Translations under genes and position numbers: made by a program
Assembly (NCBI GenBank): GCA_977017575.1
Contig: CDRNVI010000137.1
Span: 94,022-158,021 of the forward strand
DNA length: 64,000 nt
Source of the DNA: Paramoeba atlantica
Lineage: Eukaryota > Protista > Discosea
Direction: 5' to 3'
The notes under the pieces: model-generated
Seen by the model: only the letters and a program-made list of their open reading frames with translations
What the model was told of the DNA's origin: nothing
The model's database searches: none
Part shown: positions 35,401 to 58,352 of the stretch, piece after piece
Numbering within the stretch: position 1 is the first letter of the stretch
How the letters are laid out: every line of letters begins with the position of its first letter

Positions 35401-38400
35401 TCTTAATTGTTTTGAATTGATGTATTTAATTTATTTTTTATTTTCTTTTTTTCACATTAATTTTTTGTAATTTCAATTTCTTAATTATGTCTCCATATTG
35501 AATGCAATTTCCTAATTTATTTTCTGATTCTGTGATATTTTTAGAACTTATATTTCAGATCTATGATATTTTTTAAGTTGGTTCAATAAAATTTCTTAAT
35601 TGTTTTTGGTTGATGTATTTGATTTATTTTTTGTTTCATTTTTTTCATATTATTTTTTTGTAATTTCAATTTCTTAATTATGTCTCTATATTGAATGCAA
35701 TTCCTTAATTTATTTTCTGATTCTCTGATATTTTTAGAACTTATATTTCAGATCTATGATATTTTTTAAGTTGGTTCAATCAAATTTCTTAATTGTTTTG
35801 AATTGATGTATTTAATTTATTTTTTATTTTCTTTTTTTCACATTAATTTTTTGTAATTTCAATTTCTTAATTATGTCTCCATATTGAATGCAATTTCCTA
35901 ATTTATTTTCTGATTCTGTGATATTTTTAGAACTTATATTTCAGATCTATGATATTTTTTAAGTTGGTTCAATAAAATTTCTTAATTGTTTTTGGTTGAT
36001 GTATTTGATTTATTTTTTGTTTCATTTTTTTCATATTATTTTTTTGTAATTTCAATTTCTTAATTATGTCTCTATATTGAATGCAATTCCTTAATTTATT
36101 TTCTGATTCTCTGATATTTTTAGAACTTATATTTCAGATCTATGATATTTTTTAAGTTGGTTCAATCAAATTTCTTAATTGTTTTGAATTGATGTATTTA
36201 ATTTATTTTTTATTTTCTTTTTTTCACATTAATTTTTTGTAATTTCAATTTCTTAATTATGTCTCCATATTGAATGCAATTTCCTAATTTATTTTCTGAT
36301 TCTGTGATATTTTTAGAACTTATATTTCAGATCTATGATATTTTTTAAGTTGGTTCAATAAAATTTCTTAATTGTTTTTGGTTGATGTATTTGATTTATT
36401 TTTTGTTTCATTTTTTTCATATTATTTTTTTGTAATTTCAATTTCTTAATTATGTCTCTATATTGAATGCAATTCCTTAATTTATTTTCTGATTCTCTGA
36501 TATTTTTAGAACTTATATTTCAGATCTATGATATTTTTTAAGTTGGTTCAATCAAATTTCTTAATTGTTTTGAATTGATGTATTTAATTTATTTTTTATT
36601 TTCTTTTTTTCACATTAATTTTTTGTAATTTCAATTTCTTAATTATGTCTCCATATTGAATGCAATTTCCTAATTTATTTTCTGATTCTGTGATATTTTT
36701 AGAACTTATATTTCAGATCTATGATATTTTTTAAGTTGGTTCAATAAAATTTCTTAATTGTTTTTGGTTGATGTATTTGATTTATTTTTTGTTTCATTTT
36801 TTTCATATTATTTTTTTGTAATTTCAATTTCTTAATTATGTCTCTATATTGAATGCAATTCCTTAATTTATTTTCTGATTCTCTGATATTTTTAGAACTT
36901 ATATTTCAGATCTATGATATTTTTTAAGTTGGTTCAATCAAATTTCTTAATTGTTTTGAATTGATGTATTTAATTTATTTTTTATTTTCTTTTTTTCACA
37001 TTAATTTTTTGTAATTTCAATTTCTTAATTATGTCTCCATATTGAATGCAATTTCCTAATTTATTTTCTGATTCTGTGATATTTTTAGAACTTATATTTC
37101 AGATCTATGATATTTTTTAAGTTGGTTCAATAAAATTTCTTAATTGTTTTTGGTTGATGTATTTGATTTATTTTTTGTTTCATTTTTTTCATATTATTTT
37201 TTTGTAATTTCAATTTCTTAATTATGTCTCTATATTGAATGCAATTCCTTAATTTATTTTCTGATTCTCTGATATTTTTAGAACTTATATTTCAGATCTA
37301 TGATATTTTTTAAGTTGGTTCAATCAAATTTCTTAATTGTTTTGAATTGATGTATTTAATTTATTTTTTATTTTCTTTTTTTCACATTAATTTTTTGTAA
37401 TTTCAATTTCTTAATTATGTCTCCATATTGAATGCAATTTCCTAATTTATTTTCTGATTCTGTGATATTTTTAGAACTTATATTTCAGATCTATGATATT
37501 TTTTAAGTTGGTTCAATAAAATTTCTTAATTGTTTTTGGTTGATGTATTTGATTTATTTTTTGTTTCATTTTTTTCATATTATTTTTTTGTAATTTCAAT
37601 TTCTTAATTATGTCTCTATATTGAATGCAATTCCTTAATTTATTTTCTGATTCTCTGATATTTTTAGAACTTATATTTCAGATCTATGATATTTTTTAAG
37701 TTGGTTCAATCAAATTTCTTAATTGTTTTGAATTGATGTATTTAATTTATTTTTTATTTTCTTTTTTTCACATTAATTTTTTGTAATTTCAATTTCTTAA
37801 TTATGTCTCCATATTGAATGCAATTTCCTAATTTATTTTCTGATTCTGTGATATTTTTAGAACTTATATTTCAGATCTATGATATTTTTTAAGTTGGTTC
37901 AATAAAATTTCTTAATTGTTTTTGGTTGATGTATTTGATTTATTTTTTGTTTCATTTTTTTCATATTATTTTTTTGTAATTTCAATTTCTTAATTATGTC
38001 TCTATATTGAATGCAATTCCTTAATTTATTTTCTGATTCTCTGATATTTTTAGAACTTATATTTCAGATCTATGATATTTTTTAAGTTGGTTCAATCAAA
38101 TTTCTTAATTGTTTTGAATTGATGTATTTAATTTATTTTTTATTTTCTTTTTTTCACATTAATTTTTTGTAATTTCAATTTCTTAATTATGTCTCCATAT
38201 TGAATGCAATTTCCTAATTTATTTTCTGATTCTGTGATATTTTTAGAACTTATATTTCAGATCTATGATATTTTTTAAGTTGGTTCAATAAAATTTCTTA
38301 ATTGTTTTTGGTTGATGTATTTGATTTATTTTTTGTTTCATTTTTTTCATATTATTTTTTTGTAATTTCAATTTCTTAATTATGTCTCTATATTGAATGC

Positions 38401-40083
38401 AATTCCTTAATTTATTTTCTGATTCTCTGATATTTTTAGAACTTATATTTCAGATCTATGATATTTTTTAAGTTGGTTCAATCAAATTTCTTAATTGTTT
38501 TGAATTGATGTATTTAATTTATTTTTTATTTTCTTTTTTTCACATTAATTTTTTGTAATTTCAATTTCTTAATTATGTCTCCATATTGAATGCAATTTCC
38601 TAATTTATTTTCTGATTCTGTGATATTTTTAGAACTTATATTTCAGATCTATGATATTTTTTAAGTTGGTTCAATAAAATTTCTTAATTGTTTTTGGTTG
38701 ATGTATTTGATTTATTTTTTGTTTCATTTTTTTCATATTATTTTTTTGTAATTTCAATTTCTTAATTATGTCTCTATATTGAATGCAATTCCTTAATTTA
38801 TTTTCTGATTCTCTGATATTTTTAGAACTTATATTTCAGATCTATGATATTTTTTAAGTTGGTTCAATCAAATTTCTTAATTGTTTTGAATTGATGTATT
38901 TAATTTATTTTTTATTTTCTTTTTTTCACATTAATTTTTTGTAATTTCAATTTCTTAATTATGTCTCCATATTGAATGCAATTTCCTAATTTATTTTCTG
39001 ATTCTGTGATATTTTTAGAACTTATATTTCAGATCTATGATATTTTTTAAGTTGGTTCAATAAAATTTCTTAATTGTTTTTGGTTGATGTATTTGATTTA
39101 TTTTTTGTTTCATTTTTTTCATATTATTTTTTTGTAATTTCAATTTCTTAATTATGTCTCTATATTGAATGCAATTCCTTAATTTATTTTCTGATTCTCT
39201 GATATTTTTAGAACTTATATTTCAGATCTATGATATTTTTTAAGTTGGTTCAATCAAATTTCTTAATTGTTTTGAATTGATGTATTTAATTTATTTTTTA
39301 TTTTCTTTTTTTCACATTAATTTTTTGTAATTTCAATTTCTTAATTATGTCTCCATATTGAATGCAATTTCCTAATTTATTTTCTGATTCTGTGATATTT
39401 TTAGAACTTATATTTCAGATCTATGATATTTTTTAAGTTGGTTCAATAAAATTTCTTAATTGTTTTTGGTTGATGTATTTGATTTATTTTTTGTTTCATT
39501 TTTTTCATATTATTTTTTTGTAATTTCAATTTCTTAATTATGTCTCTATATTGAATGCAATTCCTTAATTTATTTTCTGATTCTCTGATATTTTTAGAAC
39601 TTATATTTCAGATCTATGATATTTTTTAAGTTGGTTCAATCAAATTTCTTAATTGTTTTGAATTGATGTATTTAATTTATTTTTTATTTTCTTTTTTTCA
39701 CATTAATTTTTTGTAATTTCAATTTCTTAATTATGTCTCCATATTGAATGCAATTTCCTAATTTATTTTCTGATTCTGTGATATTTTTAGAACTTATATT
39801 TCAGATCTATGATATTTTTTAAGTTGGTTCAATAAAATTTCTTAATTGTTTTTGGTTGATGTATTTGATTTATTTTTTGTTTCATTTTTTTCATATTATT
39901 TTTTTGTAATTTCAATTTCTTAATTATGTCTCTATATTGAATGCAATTCCTTAATTTATTTTCTGATTCTCTGATATTTTTAGAACTTATATTTCAGATC
40001 TATGATATTTTTTAAGTTGGTTCAATCAAATTTCTTAATTGTTTTGAATTGATGTATTTAATTTATTTTTTATTTTCTTTTTT
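29420..40083. repeat. AT-rich satellite: 193-bp monomers in a 386-bp A/B higher-order repeat (~27 dimers)
   Basis: Monomer starts at 29701 (ctccata), 29894 (ctctata), 30087, 30280 ... 39737 = 29701+26x386. Monomer A has 37/193 G+C and no CpG. A diverged monomer lies at 29420-29700. Confidence 0.98.
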
Positions 40084-41312
40084 ATCAAAAATTTTTTTCT
40101 CTTTTTTGAATATTTAAAATCTTATTTTTTTCAAAAATATAAAAATCAAATTGAGAAAAATATTTTTATTTTTAGCCAAATAAAGAAAATTAGTTTTGTT
40201 TCTGAAATTGATTTTAGTTTTTTGTTTGTTTTTGTTGGTTTTTGTTTAATTGCTTCATTTCACCTAAATTCCTTTTCAAGAATTTATTATCTTCTTTTTT
40301 AAAAAAAAAAAAATCTTTTATCTTTCTTGTTAAAGTAATTTCATTGTAAAATTTAAAACTTTTAGTTCATGAATACATTCTTTTTTATGAAACCTTTGAA
40401 TGAGAAAAGTTGACTCTTTGTTAAACTTTAATTAAGTAATGTTATTGTTTTTATGAAAAATTGATTTTTAATAATTCAAATGAAAAAGAATGAATAAAAA
40501 CTTTCACAACTATAAGTTGTTTTTTTCAAATTGACTAACAACAAAACAGAAAACTTTTCAAAACCTAGGGTAATCTGCTTTTTGGAGTGAAATCAAAGAT
40601 ATGAAAACACTTTACAAAGATTGAACCTTCTCAAATTGATAAAATTGTTAAGTATGTGTAAAAATGTAATGGAAACCAAGTTTCATTGATCCAAACCACC
40701 TTCAAAGATTGGATTAATACCACTTTCTCAAAAGCAATCTTTTTCACCTGAATTTATTTCTTTGTTTAGAGTGAAAAACAACTTTTTCTTATTGATTCAG
40801 AGTCATTTGAGATAGAGAGGTGCAGTTTGTTTGAGGAAAAGCTGAAACAAAATACAAAAAAATTGTAAGAAAAAATTGATGCTACTCACTCTCAATTGAT
40901 CATAAATATTAATGAAACTGATTTTAATTGCAAAAAAGATACTGAAAAACTCAAAGTTGTTTTAATATATAATTGCTCCTATATATATTGTTCCTCTTGA
41001 AATGAATTCTATATCACTTTAATACTTATAGTTGGTATTATTGGATGGAGTCTTTCAATTTTTGCAACTATCAAAACAATATTCTTTGTTTTAGACTTAA
41101 AGGTGATGTATAATTTCTCAGTAAATGAGTAGTATTATATAATATTATTTTCATCATCAAATATCAATAATAAGTTATTTTCTTATTAAATTGATAAAAT
41201 TTTTGTTCTAAAAGTAATTATAAGATGTTGATTTTTAGAGTTCAAAGATAATACCAAAACTCTTCTTATCTTAAATAGTTGTTTTGTTTATAGTGTTGCA
41301 AATTTTCAAGCC

Positions 41313-42930
41313 TTAACTTGTAATTTCACAAAGTAATTCATTTAAAGCATAATTTTTTCTAGTATGGGTTTTGAACATTGTCTTGGTAAGAATTATACAA
41401 TCTTCAACAATCACAATCTTTTTTATCATTGATCTAATACTTTGTATCCCTTTTAAGTAGTCTATAAATTCACCAATATTGTTAAAGCTAAGAGAAATGG
41501 TTTCAAACCCACCACATATTTCTCTCTCTTTCCTGAAAACTGCAAAATCTGCACCCCCCAGATGAAGGCCTGTATATCTTGAATCATTATAAAACATTTA
41601 AAAGCTTTTGAATTTAAAGTTTTTCTTCTTTTTAGGTTCTTTTTTGATTTGAGTTCTTGGAGGCTAAAGAAGGATTTTATTCTTTCTCAGGATTTTTCTA
41701 ACAATTTTTATAGTAAACTAAACTAATTTAGTTTCTTCTGCACACACTATGAGCCACAAACTTAGTAAGGCAGCACTCACCACAGAGGTTTCTTGTCTAG
41801 TAAAATACTTTGAGACAAGACCACATACATTTTTAGTTTCTTGCCAATTGAGTACTTTCAGCAAAATACATTTCCTTCCTCTTGCTTGAAGAAAACCCTC
41901 AACCACAAAGCATTTTTCCAGTAGATGAGATTATAACTCCTTTTCTCAGTGGCAGAGGCAACAACTTGAATCTTGGTTTGAGAAGTGAAACAACTTGTTT
42001 CTTGTAGATAGTTCTTTTATTAGAAATTTAAGTAAATTCTTCTTAAACTGAGGTTTAATTGCATGAACCAAGTTGTACACCACATACTCAGCTCTTCTTT
42101 TCCCCACATACAAGTCTTTGATTTCAATTGAAATCATTTGAGACATATTGGTATATGTAACACAAGTGGCCTGGCCAAACACAACTTTGGAAGAAAGGCT
42201 TTGGGCTGCAATGAAAGCATTCTTCCACATGGCTTCAATGGAGAGAGGATTCTAATAATCACTCTTCATTGGTGGACAAGAGGTGAAAAGAGCCCAATTA
42301 AAAACAATAGGGTGATGTAGTTGAGGATTTGAGTCCAAAGAGGATAGCATAAAGTAAGAACAGAGGTTTTAGTGATGGCATAGGCACCCAGGGCTGAGCA
42401 AATGGATTTCCACATCAAAGAGGTGATAGATTTTAGGATCAACTTGAATCTCACTAAGTATTCCATACATGGAGTTAGATAGATATTGACCATCCTCACT
42501 CTTGAGTAAAAATTCCCACCTCTCTTTTTAATTGCTGTTCCAACTTTCTTCATCTTTTGGACCACCTTCTCTCAATCTTTGAGAGAAGATAACCATTTAT
42601 TCAATCTCACTCCCAGTTTCATTACCACAGTAATTGAGTCTTGCCATCTCAGACCAGGGGCCTACTGGTTTGTAAGACTCAGTTGAGAGGACAAAGCACT
42701 TATTAAAGTTCAGTTTAGCTTCAGTTGCTTCTTTATATTTCTTAAAGGTTGGAGTGAGAGAATTGATGGTTTCAACTCTCTGAAGCACTATCCCCAAATC
42801 ATCCATAAAGCCTGACAGATCTTGGAGGTTGTGTTTCTTCTTCAAACTCACAAGGAGGATGTCAAACACAATCACAAACAATAGAAGGGAGATTGGGCAT
42901 CTTTGTCTAACTCCTGTCCAGCTTTGGATT
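41313..42930 (-). pseudogene. L1/Tx1-like non-LTR ORF2, C-terminal half of RT and downstream region
   Basis: GVRQRCPISLLLFVIVFDILL, GFMDDL and EATEAKLNFNKC are L1-type RT motifs B, C and D. CpG-free, many breaks. Confidence 0.8.
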
Positions 42931-43108
42931 GATTCTTTGGTGCCTGCCCTTTTGGATTCACTAATCACTTTGGGACAAAAAAATTTCTTGGGAGAGAACA
43001 TAGCCAGAGGTCAACCTGCATTTTTTGGCTCTGAAACACGACTGTGGAAGTGATGTGGCAAAGTGGATAGGCAAAAAAGACCCCAAAAAAACGCGGAAAG
43101 GCGAAAAG

Positions 43109-43910
43109 ATATGAACCCAATTGCCAAAAAGGATGATAATTGGGTTCTTTTTCACTCAAAATTTTTGGGTGGGATCAAGATGGCGTGGGAGAGGAGGAGG
43201 TGTTCTTTTTCAACTTCTCGAAATGGAAAACAAACTGATGATCGAAGATACTTGGGAGATTGAAGAATATCTCCATTTGATTCAGAAAGAGCAAAACACT
43301 TCAAATAGAAGAAAAAAAGCGAAAAAAATAGCAGGACCTGGTGGAAACAAACAAGACGAGATGACAATGCTGATGAATGAACAAATGGTTCATTGTGTTC
43401 TGGCACAAAGAATCCCAAAGACCCTCGAAAAATTGGTAAAAAACACTCTCATGAGTTTTTTTTTTTTCTAAAGATTCTTTTTTTCACTCACACACAAAAT
43501 TCTTTTAGTGGAGGGGAAAAGGTTGAAAACATTGGTGCTCTCGCCGGGTTTTCATTCAACATTTCCCTGAGGCCCTCTTTTTCTTTTTGGTCGATAATAA
43601 CGTTACCAAAACCAAAACAAATCGAAAAACCGGGAAGAAAGAATTTTGGGGACAACTTGATCTCCCTTCACAAATCCGAAAGAAGTTGGGGGTCATTGCC
43701 TACCAGAAAATTTTTCGGGATGGGTCCACTGCAACAGTGACTGGCCCTGTGAAAATCAAATTTTCACAGGAAAAAAAATTGTTGTCGATTTCTTATGGCT
43801 ATTTTCTTCAAAACCAAGATGGAAGGCCAGCAAAGGGGATGGCTGAAAACTGGAAACTCCCAGTAGTTGCCCCAGTTGTTGTTGTGAAAGAGGAGGCTCT
43901 CGACAAATAG
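43109..43910 (+). other. unidentified coding-like segment near the left end of the transposon (probably spliced, disrupted)
   Basis: Open frames 43121-43471 and 43587-43910 separated by a GT..AG intron-like tract (~43431-43509). No recognisable domain. Confidence 0.35.
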
Positions 43911-44073
43911 TGAAAAATAAATTATTTTTTTTATCCGAGGCACCGCCTTTTTTTTTTTTTTTTCTCTTGAGAAAAGACCAAAAAACAAAGCAGCTGCTTT
44001 GTTTCGTGACCCACTGAAGAAGAAGAAAAAGGAGGAAAAGACAGGGTTGTGTGTTGTGTTGTGTTGTGTTCAA

Positions 44074-47000
44074 ATGGCTGAGAGAGGAGTCTCTAGAAAG
44101 AAACAGTTGGTGTGTAGTCATTTGGTGCAGTTTTGTGTGAGAAGGAATGAGAAAAGTTCATGTGGAGTTTTCAGTTCAAAACAAGCCAAAAGTATTCATC
44201 AACGTTTACGCCATTATTGTCCAGATGAATGTAAGAGGTGTCAAAAAGAACAAGGTTTGAATTCTTTTCCTCTTCTTCGATCTTCAGTTTCAGAGAGTAG
44301 TTGGGTGGGTGGGTTTAAAGTTTCTGTTTGTCTTTTTTCTTTTTGGTGGGTTTGAAAGTGTTGCTATTCTGAAAGAATTTGGTGTTTGGAATTAGAAAGA
44401 GCTGCTGCTGCTGTTGATCAAACTGCTGAGAGTATGATGGGTATGGGAGCAATTCCTCAAGTTTTTCCACAACAAGGACAACAGGAACAGGTCTTTTTTT
44501 TTTGCAAAGAGAAGAGTCTTTTTATTCTTCAAGTCAAGTTAAGTGATGACACTGCAAGAAAAATAATTTTTGTTTTTTAGACTAGAAGAAGAGGTGGTAC
44601 CACCTCTGCTTTTTCCACCACCACCACCACACTCCCCATTGCTGCTTCCAACAGTACCTTTACCACCACCACCACCACCGCCACTTTTACTCCTCCTGTG
44701 ACTGCTTCTTGCCATCACCGTAGTTCCTCAGATGAGAAATTCCTCCGAACCAACTGGGTGAATGAAGCTGTGGGATCACTTGGTTTTGAAAATCCAACCT
44801 CTTTCTTGGCTCAGCTTTTAAGTGATTGCAACACTTCTCAGATTGTTGAAGTCTTAGAGAAACTCTTTCAGTTGGATGATGGAAATGCAAGAAGGGGGAG
44901 GAGTGGTTTTTCTCAGAAACAACAGATTAGAAACTTTTTTGGACTCCCAAATGATGCACAAGAAGTATCAAAAAAATATCGGTGTATGAAAAAACAGGAA
45001 AAGGCAGAGTTTTTTGGAAGATTGTTTCTAAGATTGGGTCTCACTAGGTATCAGATTCGAGGTCTTAATTCTGAACTGGGTTGGGAATTTTCAGATTGTC
45101 AGTTCAAGTATTGGTTCCAAAAACTAAAAGATCAGATTCCCTTGGAAAAAACAGACCATGGTTGGAGAGTGAATGATGTTGAGGGTGAAGTGAATAGAAT
45201 GTTTGATGATGATTGGGAGGGCAACAAGTATCCTCTTTGGGATGAATATGATCGGGTGAACAACAATATGAATCACCAAGAAGAAGCAACTATTGGTGGT
45301 GTTGCTAATGCAGAGGAAAATTTAAAGCTGAAGATGATCTTTTCTGCTGATGGGGGTTCTTTTGATCGAAGGAACAAAGGAGTTGTTGTGAAATTGATAC
45401 GTGGTGATGAAGAGTGGTGGGCAAAAGGAACTCGAACTTGGAGAGCAGTCCTCAATTTAAGTTTGGGTGTCTTTGTAATGAAAGAGAGCTTTAAAACCTT
45501 TCAAGAAGAGATATCTCCGATTTATCAGATGATTTACCAGATAAGTATTTTTTTGTAATGCTTTTAATTTAATTTAATATTAATATTAATATTAATTTAA
45601 TTTAATTTAATTTTTGACTTTTTTAATTTTTTTTTTTAAAAAAAATTAATTTAATTTTTCGTTTGATATTCATTTCATTAATTTTCTTCTCTTTTTTACC
45701 TACTTTTTCTTTCCCCTCTCTCCTCTCTCTTTCTTCTCTTGGGACTCTTTTGTGATTTTTATTAAAAAAAGATTCAGTATTCAGATTTCAAGGAATGAAC
45801 AATTTCATTCACTGAAACACATGACATGTTATGCTCTTCACTTCTTTTTGGTCATGGTGGCAAATCAATATTTCATCACACATCAAAAAGGCCTTGTTGG
45901 CGTTGTAACATTGTTCGAGATAAGGATGATAGAGGGCTTTGGGATGATCATACAAAGGTTTGCAGCTTCTTCCAAATTTTATTAAAATAATTTACTCCAT
46001 AAAAATGAATAAGAAAATAAAAGAAGAAAAATTTCAAAAATAATTAAGAAAAAAAAAATAATTTCAACTAAAAAAAATAATTTTGTTTTTACTAACATCC
46101 ACCCCCCACCCATATTTTTTTGTCAGCATCACTTTTGGGATAATCAATTTGGTGGTTATAGTATCTTTGAAAGTTTTGCTGAGGCTGATGATGAACTGGC
46201 AATTAATCTTGTTGGTAACTTGGATCAAAAACATACATGGTGAACTTTAGAACAAAAAAAAAGCGATTTTCAATTGGTTCAGGGCTGGGAGGGATCCAAG
46301 AACAGTCTTGCAAAATTTATGAATCAAATGGGAATGAGAAATCCTCCAATAACTCCATCGCAACCATGGGACCACAACTTGGACTTGATCCACTTTGTTG
46401 AAGGGACTTGTAGAAATGTTGTTAAACTTTTTGTGATGGATGTTTCTCTGTGTAAGTTAAAAAAAGAATATTTTGAAAATAATACTTTTGAAAAGAATAA
46501 AATTCTCATTGAAAAAGAAAATAGATTCACCTCATGATTTAACGATTTGAATTGCTTTTTATCTCATTGGAGGAGTGAAAATTCCAGATCCATCACAAAA
46601 GGTATTCAACCTTTGGGAGAGAATCAAAAAAGTAAGACCTAGTTACGTTCAATGGATCAAGATTTTAAGGGGTTTCCCCAATAAAACTGGTTGGTTTATT
46701 CTTCTCTTCTTTCTTTGATATCTTCTTCATTTTTAAAATTTTATAAATAATTATAATAAAAAAAAAATAATATTTTTTGAAATACTTTTTTTTTTTTTTG
46801 AATATCTTAATTATTACATTCTCTCTCTTTATTTTTCTACAACTGACAATATATTTTTGTTTTCAAAAAAAATCATTTATTTTAGCCTGAAAAGGAGCTG
46901 TTGATTTTCTTTATGATGAATATCTTATTAAATTAGCTGAATGGATGGATTCAAATCTCCAAAGTGAAAAAGTCAAAAGCATTTCACATGAACAAGAGGA

Positions 47001-50000
47001 ACCAGAAGTCCTTCCTTTTTCGGCGTTTAATGCAGCTTTGTTGAATGCAAAAGGTTGATTTACTATTTCTTGTTTTTTCCAAACAAACAAAAACTCTCTT
47101 TTTTTGATCAAATAATTTTATTCAGAAAAAAAAAATTTCAAAAGTTTTTTCATGATTTTTGTTATTCAGATTTTGATTTATCGATCATCGATGTTTTAAT
47201 TGGAGATTCAGAACGAGACACATTTGAACCAGAATATGAGTTTCTAACGTTGACTTATGACATTCTCCAAATGGCTTCAGCCCCATATCAACTCTCTCAT
47301 CAGAAGATCAATATTGTTCGAAAGGCTTCCCTTCTTTGGGGAAGAAAATATAACGAATGTAATTTCTCCCCTCTTTATTGGGCTCCTTATTTACATACCC
47401 TCCATGATCACCTTCATTGGGAGTTATTGAGGTTTGTTTTTTCTTTATTATTTTTGTGGTGTTGAAATTTTTTAAAAATGATGGTTCATAATATCCATCC
47501 TTCTTTTTTGATTTTCAGTTTTTCTGCAATACAGAATAAAGTCACTCCCCTCTGACATACACAACACAGATACCCTCTTCCACGAAGAGCAGGATTTGCA
47601 ATTGAAGGAGCCATTCTTGCAGCTCGTTCTCATTGTTGGGCCCAAAAGCCATTTGGAGGTAGACATAGGCAAGGAGTGAGCAGTCAAGAGAAAGGAACTT
47701 TTTCAATCCAAATGAATGCCTTGATCAAAGGGATGATGGAGCGAAGTGAGGCATTGAGATCAGAGAAAAAACTTGAAAACAGAGCAAGCAAAATAAGTGC
47801 AAATGAACCTTCTCGACTTATTCGTGAGGTATTTTTTGTTGACCCTTTTTTCCCCCAAATTTGTTGTTTTCTGAAAATTTCAAATTATTTTTTTTTAAAA
47901 TAAAATATGAAAACTCAAAAGCAGATTTCTAATAATTCTTTCCTTCTACCAAAATCAGGGTCACTCCTCAAAACTTGTTCCCTCTGGTTCTTCAAAGCAA
48001 CCCCCCCTCCTCAAAAGAACAAAATTACCTAATTCTGTTGCCTGCAAATCAGCTTATCAGTATGCTTCTTTGTGTTGCCAGCCCCTTCAGGATACTTTGG
48101 ATCCAATAACAAATTATCAATCCTCTTCTCATCGTCACAACATCCGCTCTTTCAACCCTTCATCACACTACATGTCTTCCCAAACCACTCCAATTAACCT
48201 CTCTTCCCCTTCCCCTTCCCCTTCCCCTTCCCCTTCCTCTTCCCCTTCCCCTTCCCCTCCCCCTTTCCTTTCTTCTCTTTCTCAATCACCAGGAAAAAAT
48301 TCTCAATTTTCTTTTTCCTATTCTTCCTTTCCTCTACCATCCCAAACATCCCAAAGTAATTTCTCTTCTTCCACTCATCTCTCAGGAAGTCCCTGTTCTT
48401 CACAGTCTTCTTTTCCTTCTCTTTCTGGTTCTTGTCCTTCTCCTTCTCTTTCTCCTTCTCCTTCTCACCAACCCTATACATCTTGGCCAACCATGTGTCA
48501 ATCATCTCAATCATCCCAACAATCCTGTATGGGAAGATTTTCTCTTTCTCCTCAGCAGCCTTCTCCTTCTCCTTCTCCTCCTCTTTCTTGCCCTTCTGTT
48601 TCTCCTTTTTCTTCTTTTCCTTCTCGCCAATCCTCTCATCAACCACTGCCTTTTCCTTCTCCAACTCCTTCTTCCCAAACCACATCCCCACATCCCCATG
48701 TTTCTTTCAGGAAGTTTCCCTTTTCTTTTTCCCCGTCTTTTGCATTTGCGACTCCCTCTCCCCCCCCATCATCAACCCCCAAAATGGTGGGTAATTTCTC
48801 ATCTTCATTTACTCATTTCCCAGTTCATTCTCATCATCCTTCTTTCTCTCCAAGTTCTCGTTTTTCACACTCACCATCTTCTTCATCTCCCTTATTGCCT
48901 TTTTCTCCTCAGTCATCTTCTTCTCTTTCTTTTTCTCTTTGTTCTCCTTTCTCTTCTCCTTCTATTTCTCATTGTTCTTCTTCTTTCTCTTTTTCTCCTT
49001 CTCCTTCTCCCCCTCCACCCTCTCTTTCTTCTTTCTCTCCTTTTGCTCCTTCCACTCCTTTCTCAGGAAGTTCCAGGAACTCTTCACACTCTTCTTTTCC
49101 TTCTCTATCTTCTACTTCTCGCCCCTTCTCCTCTCCCTGTTCTTCTCCTTATTTCTCTCCTCTTCTCTCTTCTCCCTCTCCTTCATCCTCTCCCTCTTCC
49201 TCTCCCCTTCTCTCTCCCTCCCTCTCCCCCTCTTCCTCTCCCTTTTCCTCTTCCTCTCCTCTTTCCTCTCTCTCAGTGAGAAATGCTCTTAAACTCGTTG
49301 AAATAAACGAACACCAAGCATTTCTTGCTTTGGAGCAAGAATATGCGCACATGATGACAGAAATACTCCCAAAGGTTTTTGTGATTTTTTTTCTTTCTCA
49401 TTGAGAGGAATGTTTCATTTTTTCATTTTTAGATTGATGAAGAAATTGAAGCTGGCCATTGGGACCCAATGGCTCGGGTTCAATGTATTCAAAAGATCAA
49501 AAAGCTGTCTTCTGCAAAATCAAACACCATCTACAATCATCTGATTTCTAATGCTATTCTTGTGCAAAATATGTGGTTCTTAGAGTTCCCAAACTAGGAA
49601 AAGATGAAGAAAGCAAAAAAATGGTTGAAGGAGACCGAAGTACCAATGAAAGACAACCTCAAGAATGTTTTGATTCCTGGTAAATGGGTGGAGGAGGAAG
49701 TTTGTTTTTTTTTCTTTTCTTATTTTTCATTATTTTATCATTGTTTTTATCATCTCATACCCAATATTTAGGTGGTTTCTTGGTACTGTCAGAGTTTGAA
49801 ATCCCGTTTTGTAGGAGCTCTCTTGGAATCTTTTCTTTTGGATCCACAAGTAAAAACTGATCAAAAACTCTCAAATCTTAGTCAAGTATTTTTTTTTCAA
49901 AAAATTTTTTTCAGAAATTAGAAAAAAGATTGGCAGCCAGAACATTTTTTTACCTATCAGTAATTTTCATTTTTCAGGTGATGATTTGGCAAAAAACAGG

Positions 50001-50682
50001 TTTTTATTGCATTTGTAACCCAGGAAATCACTGGGTTGTGATTGATGGAAAAATCGATGAGGCAAACAGAAAGGTTGAATTAACACTGTATGACAGTCTG
50101 AAGCAACAGCAAACAAATGACAAACCTCTCCAAGGTTTTTTGTGTTTTTTTTGTTCTTCTTTCCCTTTATTCTTCCAGTTACTGAAACTTTTTTATTTTT
50201 TTTTAATATTTTCAACAAAGATATTCAAGCTCTTTTAGAAAAACATTTTCAGGAAAGGTCTGAAGATAAGTTATCATTTCAAAGAAAAATTGCAAGTAAG
50301 GGGCCTGACCAGCAACAGGTTTTTTTTCTTGACTACCTGAATATAGATGGAGAATCTCTTGATTGTTATGTTTTATTTTTCATCCAAAACTGATTTCTTT
50401 CATTTTTTCTTTCAGAATGTCACAGAGTGTGGTGTTTTGGCTTTATTTACATTCTATTGTCTTACTCAGTCATATCCTCTGACTTTTACCCTTGCTGATT
50501 GTCCTGATATTCGTGAACATATTTTCTACAGAGTTTATGAGGAACTTCTTCCAGGTCAAACAGAAAAAAGGAAAAGGATGGATGAAGAGCGATTAAATGA
50601 ACCAAGAAGTACTGGAGTTCAAAGATCGAGAAGAAGCCAGCTGGCAACAAAGAGAAGGAAAACAACAAATCCATGGATTTGA
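44074..50682 (+). pseudogene. multi-exon DDE transposase (RAG1/Transib/CMC-like CCHH core) fused via Ser/Pro linker to Ulp1/C48 cysteine protease
   Basis: Spliced by eye with GT-AG introns. N-terminal C2H2-like finger; IFSADG (D, 45349); THDML..LFGHGG..PCWRC (D, 45823); GMRNPP..LDLIHFVEG; YLHTLHDH..LLR|YPLPRRAGFAIE (E). Then CNPGNHWVVI..LYDSL and QQQ|NVTECGVL (His 50029, Cys 50428). Four in-frame TGA (45796, 46241, 46548, 46888) plus lesions near 49560-49690. Confidence 0.8.
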
Positions 50683-50969
50683 TAATAAAAAATTACATTT
50701 CTTAAGAATTGCTCTTCTTCTTATCCCTTTCAAGTATTTTTTCTTTTCTTCTTTTCTTGGGGGGGGGGGGGGGGGGGGGGGGAACCTGTAGACAATAAAA
50801 TTTTTGGATTGTCTACAAGTCAGATTTTTTTCTCTTAATAAATTTGGTCCCCCACTCAACCCTCTCAACTTAAACTTCAGTTTTTCAAGACTGTTTTTTT
50901 ATTTACTAAGTTTTATTTATTTTTTACAGCTTTTTTTTTCTCAGACTTTTTTGCTTTTTTTGGGGTTGT

Positions 50970-51833
50970 TCATGACTCCATTGTTTCTCTTACCATTTCA
51001 CGCTTTGGGATTTTGCATGCCCGCAAATAAGAACGATGGATAATGAAAAGACCAACCATTCGATCATCTTCAGAAGGGCTTGATGGATCTTCTTCACCAT
51101 AATACCCACGAGTTCTGTGACATAACTGGTCAGTATCCAAAAGGAGAACATCCCCAATTCGAAGACCAAAAGCAATATCCAAACCACCAATCTCCAGTCC
51201 ACCAACTTGATGTTTCCCAATATGGATCATAACTAAGACAGAGAGAAAATCATTTTGGTCATAATGCATTTTGGCTGATCCTGCAGGGCACATGAATAAA
51301 TGAAACATCCCAAACTGTCCCTCAACATCGATTAATCCGTGTTTTTCCAGACAATTCCAAACATCAGGATGATACTTTTCCACCAATCTGGAAAGCTGCT
51401 TCCCAATTGATGTCAGAACAGAATCGAGAACTTTTTCGACTTCGACCTCGTAGTGGCCTCCTTTTCCAGCAGGATGAAAGGTATAATGTCCTTGTTGGGT
51501 CCATCCACCACAAAACATAAAAGCTCTCTCCCCTCTTTTTTTGTCAACTGAAGAGTCCCAATGTGTCTCTTGGCATGACAGCAAAGCTACTTGGAATTGT
51601 TTCATTTCTTCCTCAGTGAAAACCGATTTGAGGTAGTGTCCACGATAGCACTCCGTAACACGAGAATTTTTTTGGCGTTGGACCTCGAGGTACACAGACT
51701 CATTAATTATGAGACAGTGCTTCGAATGTTCCCAGTTTGGTTTTGTGGTTGCTTTCAGAGTTTTGTTCACAACTCTGAGTCCACAGCCTCTCTTTCTTTT
51801 TTTCGGCTCAGGATCATCAGGGTTTGAGGCCAT
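50970..51833 (-). CDS. TET/JBP-family 2-oxoglutarate/Fe(II) dioxygenase
   Basis: Intact, intronless ORF (287 aa from ATG 51833) with NLS PKKRKR. Motifs: HYDQND (HxD), VLVMIH..GGLEI..LRIGDVLLLD..LCHRT (distal His), DDRMVGLF (2OG-binding Arg), with spacing typical of Tet_JBP. Confidence 0.82.
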   Translation of the reverse strand: MASNPDDPEPKKRKRGCGLRVVNKTLKATTKPNWEHSKHCLIINESVYLEVQRQKNSRVTECYRGHYLKSVFTEEEMKQFQVALLSCQETHWDSSVDKKRGERAFMFCGGWTQQGHYTFHPAGKGGHYEVEVEKVLDSVLTSIGKQLSRLVEKYHPDVWNCLEKHGLIDVEGQFGMFHLFMCPAGSAKMHYDQNDFLSVLVMIHIGKHQVGGLEIGGLDIAFGLRIGDVLLLDTDQLCHRTRGYYGEEDPSSPSEDDRMVGLFIIHRSYLRACKIPKREMVRETMES

Positions 51834-52329
51834 TTTACGAGGTTGTTGTTTTGTACAAAAAAGGTTCCCAGTATTAAGCGGGCGCTGGTGAATCTCTTTT
51901 ACAACTTCCACAACTCAAAAGAAACTGTTCTGAAAAGAAAAAGGAGGGGGAAAAAGAAAAAAAGAACCATGACGCAGAAAACCGTGTCGTGGAAAAAAAA
52001 TTTTTCACAAGTTTTTTTTTGATGCTCTAAAAGGAAGCTTAGCACAGAAGCTTTTTTTTAAAGAGCTTTGAAAGGGACATGATCCATCTCTTCAAGCTAG
52101 TGAAAACAAATGCACCCCATTCCTGTTTTCTCATTCCCCGAAAACGATGTCACAGAACTGGCAAGAATGGGGGCTAATTAAATCAGGGCTGTGAAAAAAA
52201 ATAATTGTTTGTCTTTCATTTCTTTCATCACCTTGAAAAAACTCCGCATTGCAGAAAGTCATTCTTGACCTTTTCAGACTTTTTGTTTCTGGAAAAGTCA
52301 ATAGCAGGCAACAGAATACTACCCTGCAA

Positions 52330-52840
52330 TGAATTTTAACCCAAAGTGATTTAGCAGCCAGGTTACATATTCACAAAGGACTTTCTCAACAATATAGATT
52401 GCTTGAGGGGGGCATTCAGACTTTTGAGAATATGAAGGAGTGCATCACAATTCACATAATCATATGCCTTGCAAAAGTCTGTTTGGAGGAGAGTCACATC
52501 TTTTCCCTCTGCCAAAGCTTTGTAAAAAGAGTTATATACTGATTCTACTGCTTCATTAATTGATCTCCTGAAAATTCATAATTTCACCTGCTTGTTGAAT
52601 TAATTTTACTCACATATCAAAGTACTTCTCTTGTGTTGCCTTATACAAAAAGAAGGGAATACCATCAGGTCCTGTGCTGGTGTTGTTGGTTCTCTGAAGT
52701 AGTTTATCAACTTTCTTCCTATCCACATCATGTTTCTCAACTGGAAGGAAATGAGGTTGGTGGTCAGCAATCAGTTCATCAAGAGAATCTTTGTTATATG
52801 GTCTTTCTGTGCTGAGAAAACCCTCTCAAAAATCCTTAAT
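52330..52840 (-). pseudogene. L1/Tx1-like RT N-terminal half
   Basis: NTSTGPDGIPFFLYK at ~52670 and DF(AK)AYDYVNCDALLHILKSL at ~52480. Collinear with the C-terminal half at 42600-42930. Confidence 0.75.
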
Positions 52841-52904
52841 TGCTTTTTTAACCACATTATCATTATGAGAGATCACCCCATCCATGATTACATGTTGTTT
52901 TTAA

Positions 52905-53200
52905 CAAAAAGATGAAGACCATCTTTGCTTCAAGTTAACAGCTCTGTCAGGTCTGTTTGAATGAGTGTATAGTGGTATGGTTCTACAAATTGACTTCTAG
53001 TTGAATGTTTGTTCAAAAAGAAACCATATTTTTTTGGAAATGAACATCATATAATTGGTTGAAGGGAGACTAGAGTGATATTTTTTCTTGAAATTGTCAA
53101 GGGAAAGTTCCATCCTCTTGAAATTCCTGAAATGGGCTTGTTCAAGTTTCAACCTCTATCAGGTTTTGGAGTGAAAACTGTTGGTTTAATGCTTTACATG
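52905..53200 (+). pseudogene. decayed internal fragment of the piggyBac-like transposase, opposite orientation to the 56-58 kb copy
   Basis: IFFLEIVKGK..PEMGLFKFQPLSGFGVKTVGLML aligns to ILFLEIVEGK..PEMGLPKFQPPSGSGAKTVGLML at ~56930-57010. Confidence 0.8.
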
Positions 53201-55846
53201 AGAGTGAGCTTAAGCTGCACTTGCAATCATAGTGTTTTTAGAATTGAAGTGACTTCAAATATTTCTTTTGAGCTTTTAAAAAAAAATCTGATGTTATATC
53301 CATATGTTCACTCTTGTGGTCTCTTTTCTGATTTGTTTGTTTTTTGGTTGAATGAAGATGGTAAAGGTTGAAGAAATGGAACAAAAAAGAAAAAGAAAAA
53401 GGAAAAAAAGTGTGTGTTTATTATTCTTTTGATGATTAAATTGTTTGATTTGAAAGAAAAGGTTATGCATAGAAGTTGAAGGTGATGATGTTGTGAAAGG
53501 GAAAAAAAGAACCTGTTTTGTCAATTGATCCAAATAGAAACTCTTTCACTAGAGACTCCCATTCCTGGATGTATTCTCAGTGATTTTGACTTGACACTGA
53601 TTGTTTGAAGAAACTCTGATTCAAGTTCTTCTTCTTCTTCTTTATTGTCTGGGTCAATGCAACCTGATGTAAGCTCATGAAGAAAACACTGATCACAGTA
53701 GTCTTCAGTGTCTTTGGCTGAACATTGGAAAACTTTTGAAAGTGAAAGGAATTGGCCAAAGACACAACACTTGGTCCTCCCTCATCTCAACTTATGGCAA
53801 CATATAGCTTTTGAAATGTTCTCAAGTAATTGCATGAACCTGGTCCAGTGGTTTGCTCAATCTGACCAAACCCCTCCACCACCCAAAAGGAAAAGAGAAG
53901 AGGAAATTGACCTCCAAGCAGCAAAGAAGCAAATGCTGACACAACTCAATGAAATGATTGAGAATTGTAAGGACCTTAATGAACTCAAAAGAAAATTGGA
54001 CAAACAAAAATGATCCAACTGTTACTGTTCATCATAAGCAAGATAACAGTTTCACTCTCATCATTGGAGATCTGGAAAGAGATTTATTTTGAAACTTTGC
54101 TCCCCTGCTCAAACCAAACAAGAATTATCAGAAAACATGAGTCAACTTGCTTCCTCAACAAACAGTCATCATTTTAGGTCTGAGGTGTTGCATGGGTCAA
54201 CTTGTTCTCCAGTGTACACTCCAAGAGCCCACATCACTCAAGGCTTCAGCATTGGCCAAAACACTGAGTATGCAATTGATAGGTCAACTTTGTATAAGAC
54301 ATTTATTAATGCATCAATGGGTCAACTTTCAATTTCAGTTTCAAACACCAGGCCACTCAAGTGGTGATGCTCTCACTGAACCTTATCTGGAATGGAGGAG
54401 GATGTTGAGTGCACACACCCATGCCAAAACCAAATGTAGGGCACAAAAGAGTCACCCAAAAGATTAATGCTTTATCTGAGCAAGACTTAGTTTGAATAAC
54501 TGATGAATAAACTCCTAAGAAGAGGGGTAAGGACAAGCAGAGATATTGGAGAGGAAACAAAGCAATAGACCTGAATTGAACAAATGGCTGATTCATTTTG
54601 TAAACAAATGAGAAATCTTCTCTTGAATGGAATATTACCAGAATCAAAAATAGAAGCAAAGAATAATCAATTTTGAATTTCCAATCCTGTGTCCACAAGT
54701 TCATCTTGCATGATCTGACATCTTTAAAGTAAATTAAAAACCAAAGGAGAAGAAGGCAAAGAAGAAAGAAGGGGTAAGACAAGAGTGGATGAGGGGCAAA
54801 ATGGGGCACACAGGAGATGGACAAAAAGCACACACATCATCAGAAGGAATGCAATATCTCAAAAGATACCCTTGATTGAAGAATCTGAGCACTTTTTGCA
54901 CCTAAAAAGCACTCTTGTACCTCATCATTATAGTCACCATGATCAAATTCATGCAACATGGTGTGGAAGACCAGCTTGTGGAATTAATGAGGGGAATAGG
55001 GAGAAATGGAGAAAGAGAATTTAGGACTTGAGAAAGAAATAAAAGAGAGAGAGAGACACATGAGAATGGAAAGGATGAGAAAGTGAAATTTGATTTAGGA
55101 GAAATCTTCAATCCTATCAACAAGAACAGAAGAAAATGATTCTCTAACACCAACTTTAGGAAATCCAAGGATCTTGAGAGGTGGACATTATCAAATAAGG
55201 AGGTTCAAGGAGATTTCAAAGAAAGTGATGAAGAAATATAAACCCAAGAGGAGCAGACTAGTAATGCCAATCAGCTCAGTTGGCCAAAAGGATGAATATT
55301 TCCCCCCTTGATAAGGGTCACTGAGATCCTTAGGGGATGCAAGGGGGGGTCTGAATATTGAGACCTTTTGTCAAGCCACCTTTTGGGCAGTTAAGAGGAA
55401 GCAGCCAAGAACCTATTTGAATGTTGAATTGGCCCAATTGGTTCAGATTGCAATCAGAAAGAAAAGAAGATGGAAGATTGAGATCAAGATAAATAAGGGG
55501 GGGGGTTTTGGAGTTGGCTTGAGAAACTCTACTCCAAAAGGGGAAGAGACCAAAACCAAGGATAATCAAGAAGGATAAACAATGGAAAAGAAGGCCAGAG
55601 AAAGTACTCAAGAAGTATGCAAAGGAACAGGACAAAGAGGAGACTTCACCAACAGCAGCATTTCCACCCTTTTTGTACCAAAGAGAAAGATTGATCTGAA
55701 ATATGTGAACCACACAGCACAAAAACTGTGAGACTCTGGGAAAAATGTTTCACCATCTTCCAAAAGAAAAGAAAAAACCAGAAAAAAAGAAAAAACCAGA
55801 AAAACCAGAAAAAAAACAAATAAAATTGTTAAACTCTCCAGAAAAT

Positions 55847-58352
55847 TGGGTTCCTTCCAGGCCAAAAGACTAATTAGGCCTCTATTTTTGACTCTTTTTT
55901 TGAAGCCACTGGTGGGTGGAGGGGAGATTTTTTTTGATAAACTTTTTAATAAAGATCTTTTAAACAAGAATATCAAGAAATATTTGTCCAAATATTGTTT
56001 TTTGAAAAAAAAAATTGAGTCACTAAAAAAAAAAAAACATCATTTTTCAAAAGGACTAATTAGTCCTCAGTCATGTGCCTGCTCATATGGTCAGCAAAGC
56101 AACCTGAACAAAAAATGAGTGTTTGATCACAGGAGCAATAGGTTTGAACTTTCTTTGTACAATTTGTCCCATTGCATCCTACTCTTCTGGTACTCTTGTC
56201 TGGCTTCAGTCCAATTACCATTTCACCAAACTCCAGCAAAGTTGGGCTTGATCATCAGATGATGTTCTACATGAGTTGGGAGTGGTATTCGCAGGTTATA
56301 GCTTTCATCCAAGGGATGATTCTGAGAGAGTAGACCTTGGGCAACCTCAAAACGAAATTCTGCAAAGGAGAGCTCTTTGGCTTGGGGGAAAAAGTGCTGA
56401 AATATGAGGAAGGCATTGACTTCCACAACTACAAGAATGAAAGCAAACTGCCTGTGGACCCATTTTTTGGTCTTCCAGGAACTCTCCAAGGAGAGAGAAC
56501 CTTGCCTCAGTTGGTTGTGATCATCCACACAATGCCTGGTTTGATAGTAAAAGTCAAGAGGCTGAGTATATCACAGGGAGAGTCTTTGGCCTTCAAGCTT
56601 GCAATTTTGTAGGCAACCAGTGGGAAAAGAAGTTCCCCAGGTATTAATCATTATAGAAGAGTGATGAACATCTTGGAAAGCCTCCACATAGAATTTATAA
56701 CCTCTCAGAGATCCTTTCTTCACTTTCACACATAACCAGGTTCCTTCTCCTTGAGGTGTGTAACAATCTCTTTCCCTGGAATTCCTTTGGGCCAATATCA
56801 TTTTTTCTTCACAACTGAAGTACAATACAATCCCTTCTCCAAGAAGTTGAATACAACCTTCCAACACACAAAAACCACTATCCAAAGCAACTACTCGACC
56901 AGTTCCCCAAATTCCCTCAGTCATTCTAAGCATTAAACCAACAGTTTTCGCTCCAGAACCAGATGGAGGTTGAAACTTGGGCAGGCCCATTTCAGGAGGA
57001 TGGGACTTTCCTTCCACAATTTCAAGAAAGAGTATCACTTTAGTCTCCCCACAACCAATTGTATGATATTCATTTCCAAAAGGATGAGGTTTCCTCTGAA
57101 CAAACATCCAACCAGGAGCCCATTTACAGAACCACACCACCATAGACTCATCTAGACAGACCTGTCAACTTGGAACAAAGATGGTCTTCATCTTCTCATT
57201 AAAAGCAGCAATCAGGGGTCGAATTTCCCACATACAGTCTGTGTAAGAGGGTTTTGCAGAGAGAGGAGCAAGTTTAAGAGAGGAGACAATCATATCAAAC
57301 CAATTTCTACTGATATATTTCCTAAGATAAGGCAGTGTACCATGCAAGGAAGATCCAGCTGAATCCTTTGAAATTCGAAAAAAATCCCTTCTTTTATGTC
57401 CTGGGTAGAAAGACATAATCTGGCACAAGGCAATAAAATCAAGCATTTCAGCTTCAGTGAAGTTCAAAGAATGGTTAAACTCATTTGTTGCTTTCAGCAC
57501 ATCAGTTTTTAGAAAGGTTAGAGGTAGAACTTGGAGAAAAATATCGAGGGGAGTGGGGACATAAACAGCATCAAAGCGAATTCTTGTACAGGCCTTGAAG
57601 TCTTGTGCTCCTATCACAGCACAAGCATCAGTTGTTGAGGAAGACCACTCAGAAACACAAAGGAAAGATCATTTTCAACGAGTTCTGCTGCATTGTCTTC
57701 CCCTTCCTCCTCAATATCAGAGCAAGATTCAGTATCTTCATCATCAGTATCAGATGAGCCCAAAACAGGCACAGAGGTTGTTGATGCCTGGGATGAACCA
57801 GAACTTGATCCTCCTGAGCCAGAAGAGGATGATGAAGATGAAGATGGATGAGTTGAAGTCCCACAACCCTCTGAGACATCTGCTTCTCCAACAAACTTCA
57901 AATTTTCAGGAAGAGCCAGAAGGTAATCATTCTGAAAGACAGGAGAATGAAGCAAAACTACCATCTGAGATTTCCTGTCATAGTTCTGAAGTTCCACCCT
58001 TTTCACCCTGAGTGAAGAGAGAGATGCTCCTTGATATTGGTCACCAAAATGTTTCCTTAGAAGATGAGAAGGGCAAAGGTTCACAGCTTTGCAGAACCAA
58101 ATAGTATCCTCCTTCAATTCTTCAATTCTTGGAGAAGTTGATCTAGAACTCATTTTTCTCACCACTGTAACTTTTTTCATTCAGACTTTCTGAGAAAGGC
58201 ATTGTGATGAAAATCAAGAAAAAACCTCAAAGAAACACAAAAGAAAGTAAAAAAAAAAAAAAAAAAGTTCAAAAATGTGCTTTATTTTGGCCAACAAACA
58301 GGAGCCTAATTAGGCCCAAAAAGACTAATTAGGCCCCCCTGGAAAGAACCCG
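55847..58352 (-). mobile_element. piggyBac-like (DDE_Tnp_1_7/PGBD-type) DNA transposon with 15-bp TIRs
   Basis: TIR tgggttccttccagg (55847-55861) vs reverse complement cgggttctttccagg (58338-58352). Subterminal CTAATTAG palindromes at ~55870, 56056, 58306 and 58324. Confidence 0.7.
56060..58180 (-). pseudogene. piggyBac-like transposase, frameshifted
   Basis: Acidic N-terminus; RKPHPFGNEYHTIGC, VVALDSGF and VDDHNQLR (DDD core); C-terminal Cys-rich CNGTNC..YCSC..FCSGCFADH. Confidence 0.85.

Follow-up and report, generated by a model that had tools for sequence, protein, structure and literature searches.

A 64,000-nucleotide stretch of an amoeba-like protist genome (C137:94022-158021, within a 45.7-Mb eukaryotic assembly), here called the window, holds on its reverse strand an open reading frame for a TET/JBP-type dioxygenase. 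We consider it likely that this frame is cargo of a 9.4-kb DNA transposon, that it is TET type and kept by selection in the transposon lineage, and that the window copy is a decaying relic. In the mechanism that we propose, the gene would travel as cargo of a cut-and-paste element, and its product would be a small, nuclear-targeted Fe(II)/2-oxoglutarate (2OG) dioxygenase of a divergent TET/JBP clade. Active transposon lineages would keep the gene by selection and, by analogy with the TET transposons of fungi, the enzyme would most likely oxidize a modified base, probably 5-methylcytosine (5mC), on transposon DNA and so work against host silencing. Once inserted, the window copy would have been eroded together with the remainder of the element by a common C>T process that is fastest at CpG, losing its basic C-terminal tail through a CGA>TGA change and gaining four replacements. 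That the frame is still this long is owed solely to a short gene and a young copy. The survival of the frame in the window is a matter of chance (survival probability of about 0.5 to 0.6) and reflects neither protection nor selection of this particular copy.

The dioxygenase and its family

The frame spans 313 codons (50970-51911, reverse strand), a length expected by chance about 6e-5 times per window, as estimated from base composition (about 0.066 stops per codon). From the first ATG, at 51833, to a premature TGA, the coding sequence of the window copy (50970-51833, reverse strand) specifies 287 amino acids; its assignment to the TET/JBP family draws on the reading frame, profile comparison, an AlphaFold2 (AF2) model, and structural Z scores. 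Residues of the protein are counted here from the ATG, and the replacements R43C, G175R, R181H, and G266R as well as codon 314 are counted from 51911. The iron-binding HxD motif (HYD; H190 and D192) lies at 51258-51266. Sequence comparison places the second iron-binding histidine (H239), followed by a Gly>Arg change (HGT to HRT), at 51114-51119, and the conserved R258, eight residues ahead of the conserved His266, lies at 51060-51062; all three features are on the reverse strand. In alignment A2, made of 54 full-length family members and used both as AF2 input and as profile source, H190, D192, and R258 never vary and H239 hardly does; the HxD motif aligns to the HKD motif of NgTet1, and R258 aligns to the Arg of its RIGLVYFAHK segment. 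The Gly>Arg change after H239 is common to the window and a near-identical copy on contig C152 and is absent from the other compared copies, and in two older copies the CGA codon of R258 now reads Gln or stop. Residues 11-15 (51789-51803, reverse strand) form a KKRKR cluster, read from the sequence, that is a probable nuclear localization signal, and basic N-terminal clusters are present in all paralogues.

The original prediction had described an uninterrupted TET/JBP frame that keeps its HxD, His, and Arg, carries a nuclear localization signal, and retains many CpGs. The catalytic residues are present as stated, and the frame has 23 CpGs, at an observed/expected ratio (o/e) of 0.56. No stop interrupts the frame between the ATG and the last of the catalytic residues, but it is not intact, given that the TGA at 50970-50972 is a nonsense change and that four replacements have been acquired. 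As for the nuclear localization signal, the basic cluster is there and would be expected to target the protein to the nucleus.

How firmly can such a protein be placed? A Pfam search with the window protein and the six paralogue types of the genome gave no match even at an E value of 1, a PDB sequence search with the window protein gave none either, and a word-index protein search returned just four matches. An exhaustive profile search of 1.84 billion representative proteins recovered only 163 clusters, which marks the family as rare. Protein language-model (ESM) features point to Tet_JBP clusters (0.96), and 21 of the 54 family members match Pfam Tet_JBP (PF12851), with a best E value of 3.6e-16. 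Because the window protein falls below the Tet_JBP threshold and distant members rise above it, membership is transitive and the clade divergent. The A2 profile matches NgTet1 (4LT5 and 5CG8) at E values of 4e-11 to 8e-11 and CcTet at 3e-4, and other 2OG oxygenases reach 6e-4 at best, matching just around the second His. A shallow profile of 11 sequences, whose sole match was to the second-His motif of gamma-butyrobetaine dioxygenase (E value of 0.008), was superseded by this deeper profile, and a first AF2 model from an 11-sequence alignment was poor (pLDDT of 64) and was discarded.

The AF2 model built from A2 (pLDDT of 90, pTM of 0.88) has a double-stranded beta-helix fold. In structural comparison (VIA), it aligns with NgTet1 at a Z score of 18.9 (216 residues; root mean square deviation [rmsd] of 3.2), with TET2 at 18.8 (247 residues), with CcTet at 18.3, with CMD1 at 15.4, and with AlkBH3 at 14.8 (181 residues). 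Foldseek ranks 1 to 26 are all TET/JBP structures (CcTet, TET2, NgTet1, and CMD1; E values of 8e-10 to 6e-7), and AlkBH3 comes next, at 8e-6. In the ungapped A2 profile alignment, D195 and H266 fall on D234 and H297 of NgTet1, which bond N4 and N3 of 5mC (PMC4678852). In the same alignment, the position of the stacking F295 of NgTet1 (Y1902 of TET2) is I264 here, and a nearly invariant F263 stands one position earlier. As judged from profiles and a predicted fold, the window protein is a divergent member of the TET/JBP clade that Pfam Tet_JBP does not detect; both lines (NgTet1 at 8e-11; Z scores of 18 to 19) bear out the family originally proposed.

Element, decay, and selection

The gene lies within a complete, CACT-ended copy of a DNA transposon that extends from inverted repeat to inverted repeat (42966-52348, forward strand). 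An independent copy on contig C149, used for comparing and polarizing the window copy, is 98.5 to 99% identical to the window from 42963/42966 to 52348 and unrelated beyond; since identity stops at those points, the element measures 9.4 kb. Its terminal inverted repeats, 9 bp and perfect (CACTTTGGG), lie at 42966-42974 on the forward strand and at 52340-52348 on the reverse strand. A 5-bp target-site duplication, GAAAG, borders the element on C149. None was found around the window copy, where CTAAT stands at 42961-42965 and ATTTA at 52349-52353; these unlike flanks possibly stem from later rearrangement or from recombination between copies. The dioxygenase gene sits 437 bp inside the right end, convergent (tail to tail) with the transposase gene, and the three copies of the main assembly and the eight of a second assembly all lie inside the same element.

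The premature stop of the window copy, TGA at 50970-50972 on the reverse strand, arose by CpG>TpG change from a CGA (Arg) codon that is still CGA in the C149 copy and in L043, the least-mutated natural copy (protein P0158). Two further copies are struck at the same codon, and in three DNA runs (X1, X2, and X4; same organism label) most contigs have a G at 50972. The C149 and L043 copies, the least mutated, are full length, and their frames run 19 codons further (RTTPKKAKKSEKKKAVKNK) into a basic tail. As read from the C149 copy and P0158, positions 50913-50969 on the reverse strand once held the final 18 codons (basic tail TTPKKAKKSEKKKAVKNK) and the ancestral stop, and translation of the window copy no longer reaches them. 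Basic C-terminal tails are conserved in the paralogues. Nine differences separate the window and C149 copies in the frame; one (R79H) is derived in C149, and eight are derived in the window, namely, R43C, G175R (private to C137), R181H, G266R, R314stop, and three synonymous changes. G266R sits beside the second iron-binding His and is the change that turns the family-wide HGT into HRT.

These changes are of the kind found over the whole element. There are 86 substitutions between the window and C149 copies, 67 of them C>T or G>A in the window and 34 of these 67 at CpG, for a per-site rate of 13.1% at CpG versus 1.0% elsewhere. Substitution density per kilobase is 9.6 in the TET frame, 9.3 in the transposase region, and 7.2 in the next segment. 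At the measured rates, 8.1 nonsynonymous changes, 2.9 synonymous changes, and 0.63 stops are expected in the frame; 5 (including the nonsense change), 3, and 1, respectively, are observed in the window lineage, and the probability of no stop in codons 1 to 290 is 0.61. The transposase region is much longer, so that its stops amount to about the same rate per codon as in the TET frame.

A comparison of 11 copies (3 of the main assembly and at least 8 in the second assembly, ENA ERZ24900291), with the remaining 10 set against L043 as the reference, extends this picture. C>T and G>A changes account for nearly all variant sites (125/130), and at 56 of the frame's 58 CpG positions at least one copy is mutated; the frame has 29 CpGs in the least-mutated copy, 23 in the window, and 1 to 4 in the oldest copies. 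Nonsense codons occur in 7 of the 10 copies, with the CGA codons 251, 284, and 314 struck repeatedly. The nonsynonymous share of mutated sites is 0.75 at CpG, where 0.74 is expected, and 0.80 elsewhere, again versus 0.74 (P = 0.34). Since this share is what the mutation spectrum predicts, inserted copies decay neutrally. Pooled rates per copy-site are 0.26 at CpG, 0.048 at CpC (0.073 at TCC), 0.021 at CpA, and 0.017 at CpT.

Over 20 kb, flanks included (window 35817-55817 versus C152:6000-25999), the C152 contig has 99.92% identity with the window; it represents the other allele or else a duplicate that arose very recently. Of the differences between the two sequences, 15 fall within the 9.4-kb element and 1 falls in the 10.6 kb of flanking DNA (Fisher P = 0.0015, C+G sites). 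All 14 of the 14 element substitutions since the C137/C152 split are C>T or G>A, with 2 at CpG and most in a TCC, TCT, or TCA context, a pattern that suggests an ongoing process targeted to the element that is not purely CpG deamination.

What, then, keeps the gene alive? There are 12 matches to the protein in the genome, of six or seven types at 35 to 59% identity, and in all of them the frame is open and the catalytic residues are present. The six subfamilies, all open, differ from one another by a pN of 0.28 to 0.53 and a pS of 0.70 to 0.83; given that the synonymous sites are saturated, the dN/dS ratio is at most about 0.3, an upper bound. Going by these comparisons, the gene is maintained by selection at the level of the transposon lineage. 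The original prediction held that the dioxygenase is still selected and proposed dN/dS across paralogues as the check. That idea fails for the window copy, which has a neutral ratio and a nonsense change of its own and decays like the transposase, and it holds for the transposon lineages.

The gene also appears in more than one setting. Its closest type (59% amino acid identity; L015:5771-8574, equivalent to C145:11770-14573) lies tail to tail with a Pfam-confirmed Ulp1 protease frame (PF02902; E value of 3.7e-22) and an RNase_T-like frame, in an element with no similarity to the transposase of the window element. The convergent pairing of dioxygenase and transposase 3' ends is thus found in a different element type as well. 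Elements on C164 and C143 (compared over L020 and L031, C164:36000-55999, and over L021 and L032, C143:35000-54999) are 96 to 99% identical to the window element in a transposase segment and the right end (window 44262-48198 and 52026-52348), and the intervening 3.8 kb, with the low-complexity tract, the 3' transposase exons, and the dioxygenase gene, is only about 46 to 48% identical at the protein level. Such mosaics, read from sequence, point to recombination between subfamilies. Taken together with the C145 context, they indicate that the gene moves between element backbones, as the TET gene of fungal TET-bearing transposons likewise does (Kojima 2025, PMC12730594).

The transposase gene region of the window copy (44074-50682, forward strand) is split by introns and broken by window-specific stops, 1-bp indels, and a deletion of about 400 bp at 48996 relative to the C149 copy. 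The original prediction had counted at least four nonsense codons in the transposase; six window-specific stops are now located, at 45796, 46241, 46548, 46888, 49542, and 49595, each in a frame that the C149 copy keeps open. Two GT..AG introns, at 47052-47167 and 47430-47567 on the forward strand, are read from spliced contigs of X5, a probable RNA run, and these contigs carry the letters of a copy other than that of the window. The label Ulp1 for the 3' exons of this transposase is unconfirmed, Pfam being blank, as is a BLASTP comparison with the Pfam-confirmed Ulp1 of another element. The ~400-bp deletion falls in a Ser/Pro-rich low-complexity frame of 444 codons (window 48070-49404), the length of which differs among copies. 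Outside the element, the flanks are CpG deserts, with 0 CpG in 2,966 bp on the left (40000-42965) and 9 CpG in 5,652 bp on the right (52349-58000; o/e of 0.04); the element landed in repeat DNA that was already old and had decayed fully. Directly upstream, at window 30001-40000, is a long AT-rich tandem array (GC of about 0.185, strong AT skew) that is present also on C152; it matches itself at an offset of 386 bases, and shifting it by half as much gives a register of 92.6% identity.

Competing explanations

Could the frame owe its survival to something other than chance? Under host domestication, the copy or the gene would be kept by purifying selection for the host while the element rots, a notion encouraged by a frame that is open through all catalytic residues beside a transposase with several stops and by the canonical long Tet_JBP genes of the host, which indicate that TET chemistry is used in the organism. 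However, every copy, in both assemblies, lies inside the transposon and decays freely: the window copy has a nonsense change and four replacements against three synonymous changes, the pooled changes are neutral, most copies compared with L043 have nonsense codons, and the stop rate per codon is alike in the TET and transposase genes. Domestication, which the original prediction had offered, is contradicted by these data, and we regard it as exceedingly improbable. The companion proposal was self-protection in cis, whereby the enzyme would keep its own DNA unmethylated and the gene would escape CpG decay. The contrast behind it is real, in that the CpG o/e is 0.56 in the frame, 0.29 in the rest of the element, and 0.00 to 0.04 in the flanks. 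Yet the window copy has lost CpGs from the frame (29 to 23, 21%) just as the whole element has (132 to 102, 23%), and older copies retain 1 to 4 of the 29. Moreover, the o/e is already 0.66 in the frame of the least-mutated copy and is thus inherited, which fits a coding sequence rich in CGN Arg codons, and it is conspicuous against the old CpG desert into which this young element inserted. Local protection from methylation-driven decay is thereby contradicted also, and we give it next to no credence.

The identity of the enzyme and that of its substrate are separate matters. That the protein is some other 2OG oxygenase (an AlkB-like repair demethylase, a prolyl hydroxylase, or a TauD-like enzyme) might be argued from the lack of a direct match in Pfam and PDB sequence searches, the contact of the shallow profile with gamma-butyrobetaine dioxygenase, the Z score of AlkBH3, and the few family members that also match WelO5 and 2OG-FeII_Oxy_3. 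We find this very unlikely, given that TET/JBP structures occupy Foldseek ranks 1 to 26 with E values four orders of magnitude better than that of AlkB, that they align over 212 to 250 residues versus about 180 for AlkB, and that the deeper profile reaches NgTet1 far above any other family. An AlkB or prolyl-hydroxylase assignment, the outcome against which the original prediction was to be judged, finds no Pfam 2OG-FeII_Oxy match with the window protein, and both classes rank below all TET/JBP structures. A different proposal keeps the fold and the cargo role and exchanges 5mC in DNA for thymine (JBP-like, yielding 5-hydroxymethyluracil [5hmU]), N6-methyladenine (6mA), or m5C in RNA. A C5 methyltransferase gene (PF00145 and TIGR00675 models) was not found in the assembly, although its absence is not proven; like searches did find an MT-A70 gene (C24:82434-82952 and C11) and the canonical Tet_JBP genes (C3:218187-218660 and C30, with 893-amino-acid frames; C39 and C40, with frames of about 1,044 amino acids). 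CcTet acts also on 6mA (PDB 7W5P; Kojima 2025, PMC12730594), the stacking aromatic aligns here with an aliphatic residue, and the Asp at HxD+3 (D234 of NgTet1) is common to JBP1 and to NgTet1, which has some measurable activity on thymine (PMC11804724, PMC4678852), so that the substrate cannot be read from sequence. On the other side, the C>T decay of transposon copies is 13 to 25 times faster at CpG, a classic 5mC footprint that argues for 5mC as the substrate; 5mC oxidases are the nearest relatives of solved structure, by profile as well as by fold; and D195 and H266 correspond to the two residues of NgTet1 that contact cytosine. We therefore hold another substrate to be unlikely, if a proposal of some substance. 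C>T erosion directed at repeats, with its highest rate at CpG and the next highest at TCC, together with the failure to find a canonical C5 methyltransferase, leads to a further and rather doubtful idea, in which transposon TET-like enzymes would counter a noncanonical base-modifying or deaminating defense or would act on thymine or 6mA.

Our preferred reading, of TET-type cargo selected in transposon lineages and decaying in the window, has several points to its disadvantage. The window protein by itself reaches no Pfam threshold, and the base-stacking aromatic (F295 in NgTet1, Y1902 in TET2) aligns with Ile, Val, or Leu in the window protein and its paralogues. The dN/dS ratio between subfamilies is bounded from above by saturated synonymous sites, and the sole probable RNA run, X5 (16.5 million letters of contigs), has no contig over the TET gene. 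Base oxidation and anti-silencing are predicted roles, drawn from sequence, a model, and analogy. Finally, with no C5 methyltransferase found, 5mC is in this organism a presumed substrate.

Relation to known systems

TET-bearing DNA transposons of fungi were reportedly described by Iyer et al. in 2014. They include members of the CACTA/EnSpm-Mirage-Chapaev-Transib group (EnSpm, Plavaka, and ESTA) (Kojima 2025, PMC12730594). The likeness to the present system is considerable: a DDE-type DNA transposon carries, between its inverted repeats, a small TET/JBP gene that is distinct from the gene for the transposase; a single genome has several TET-bearing element types; related TET genes occur in unrelated element types; and host repeats are under C>T hypermutation. 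In contrast to the fungal case, the host here is an amoeba-like protist, the clade escapes Pfam Tet_JBP, the gene is tail to tail with the 3' end of the transposase, no C5 methyltransferase was found in the host assembly, and the TET frame is broken in most mutated copies. Based on this analogy, the gene is probably anti-silencing cargo, as in the fungal elements.

Among individual enzymes, NgTet1 of Naegleria gruberi (4LT5, 5CG8, and 5CG9) is the best match by both profile and structure. It too is about 300 amino acids long and without a Cys-rich domain or large insert, and it shares the HxD..H triad, the Asp at HxD+3, and the R-x7-H segment; it differs in that identity is only 15 to 17%, in a stacking Phe295 that aligns with Ile of the window protein, and in being described as a host gene rather than transposon cargo. 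CcTet of Coprinopsis cinerea (7VPN, 8JKK, and 7W5P) is, like the window gene, a transposon-linked TET (Kyakuja), and it belongs to another TET clade and another transposon superfamily; its activity on 5mC and 6mA is proven, whereas activity is predicted here. The thymine hydroxylases JBP1 and JBP2 of kinetoplastids belong to the same superfamily and have the Asp at HxD+3 in common (PMC11804724), but they are long, belong to the host, and include a J-DNA-binding or SNF2 domain, whereas the window protein is a bare catalytic domain with basic tails.

One gene in 11 states of decay is an unusually clean natural experiment in neutral, CpG-first C>T erosion. That no cytosine methyltransferase gene is detectable in the assembly raises the question of what the enzymes act on; if the noncanonical alternative were true, it would mean a transposon-host conflict over chemistry not yet described in Amoebozoa-like protists. 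In the literature that we searched, TET-carrying transposons are published for fungi only. The elements described here extend them to another eukaryotic supergroup, in several element types and with a TET clade that is invisible to Pfam, and with them, putatively, an anti-silencing strategy.

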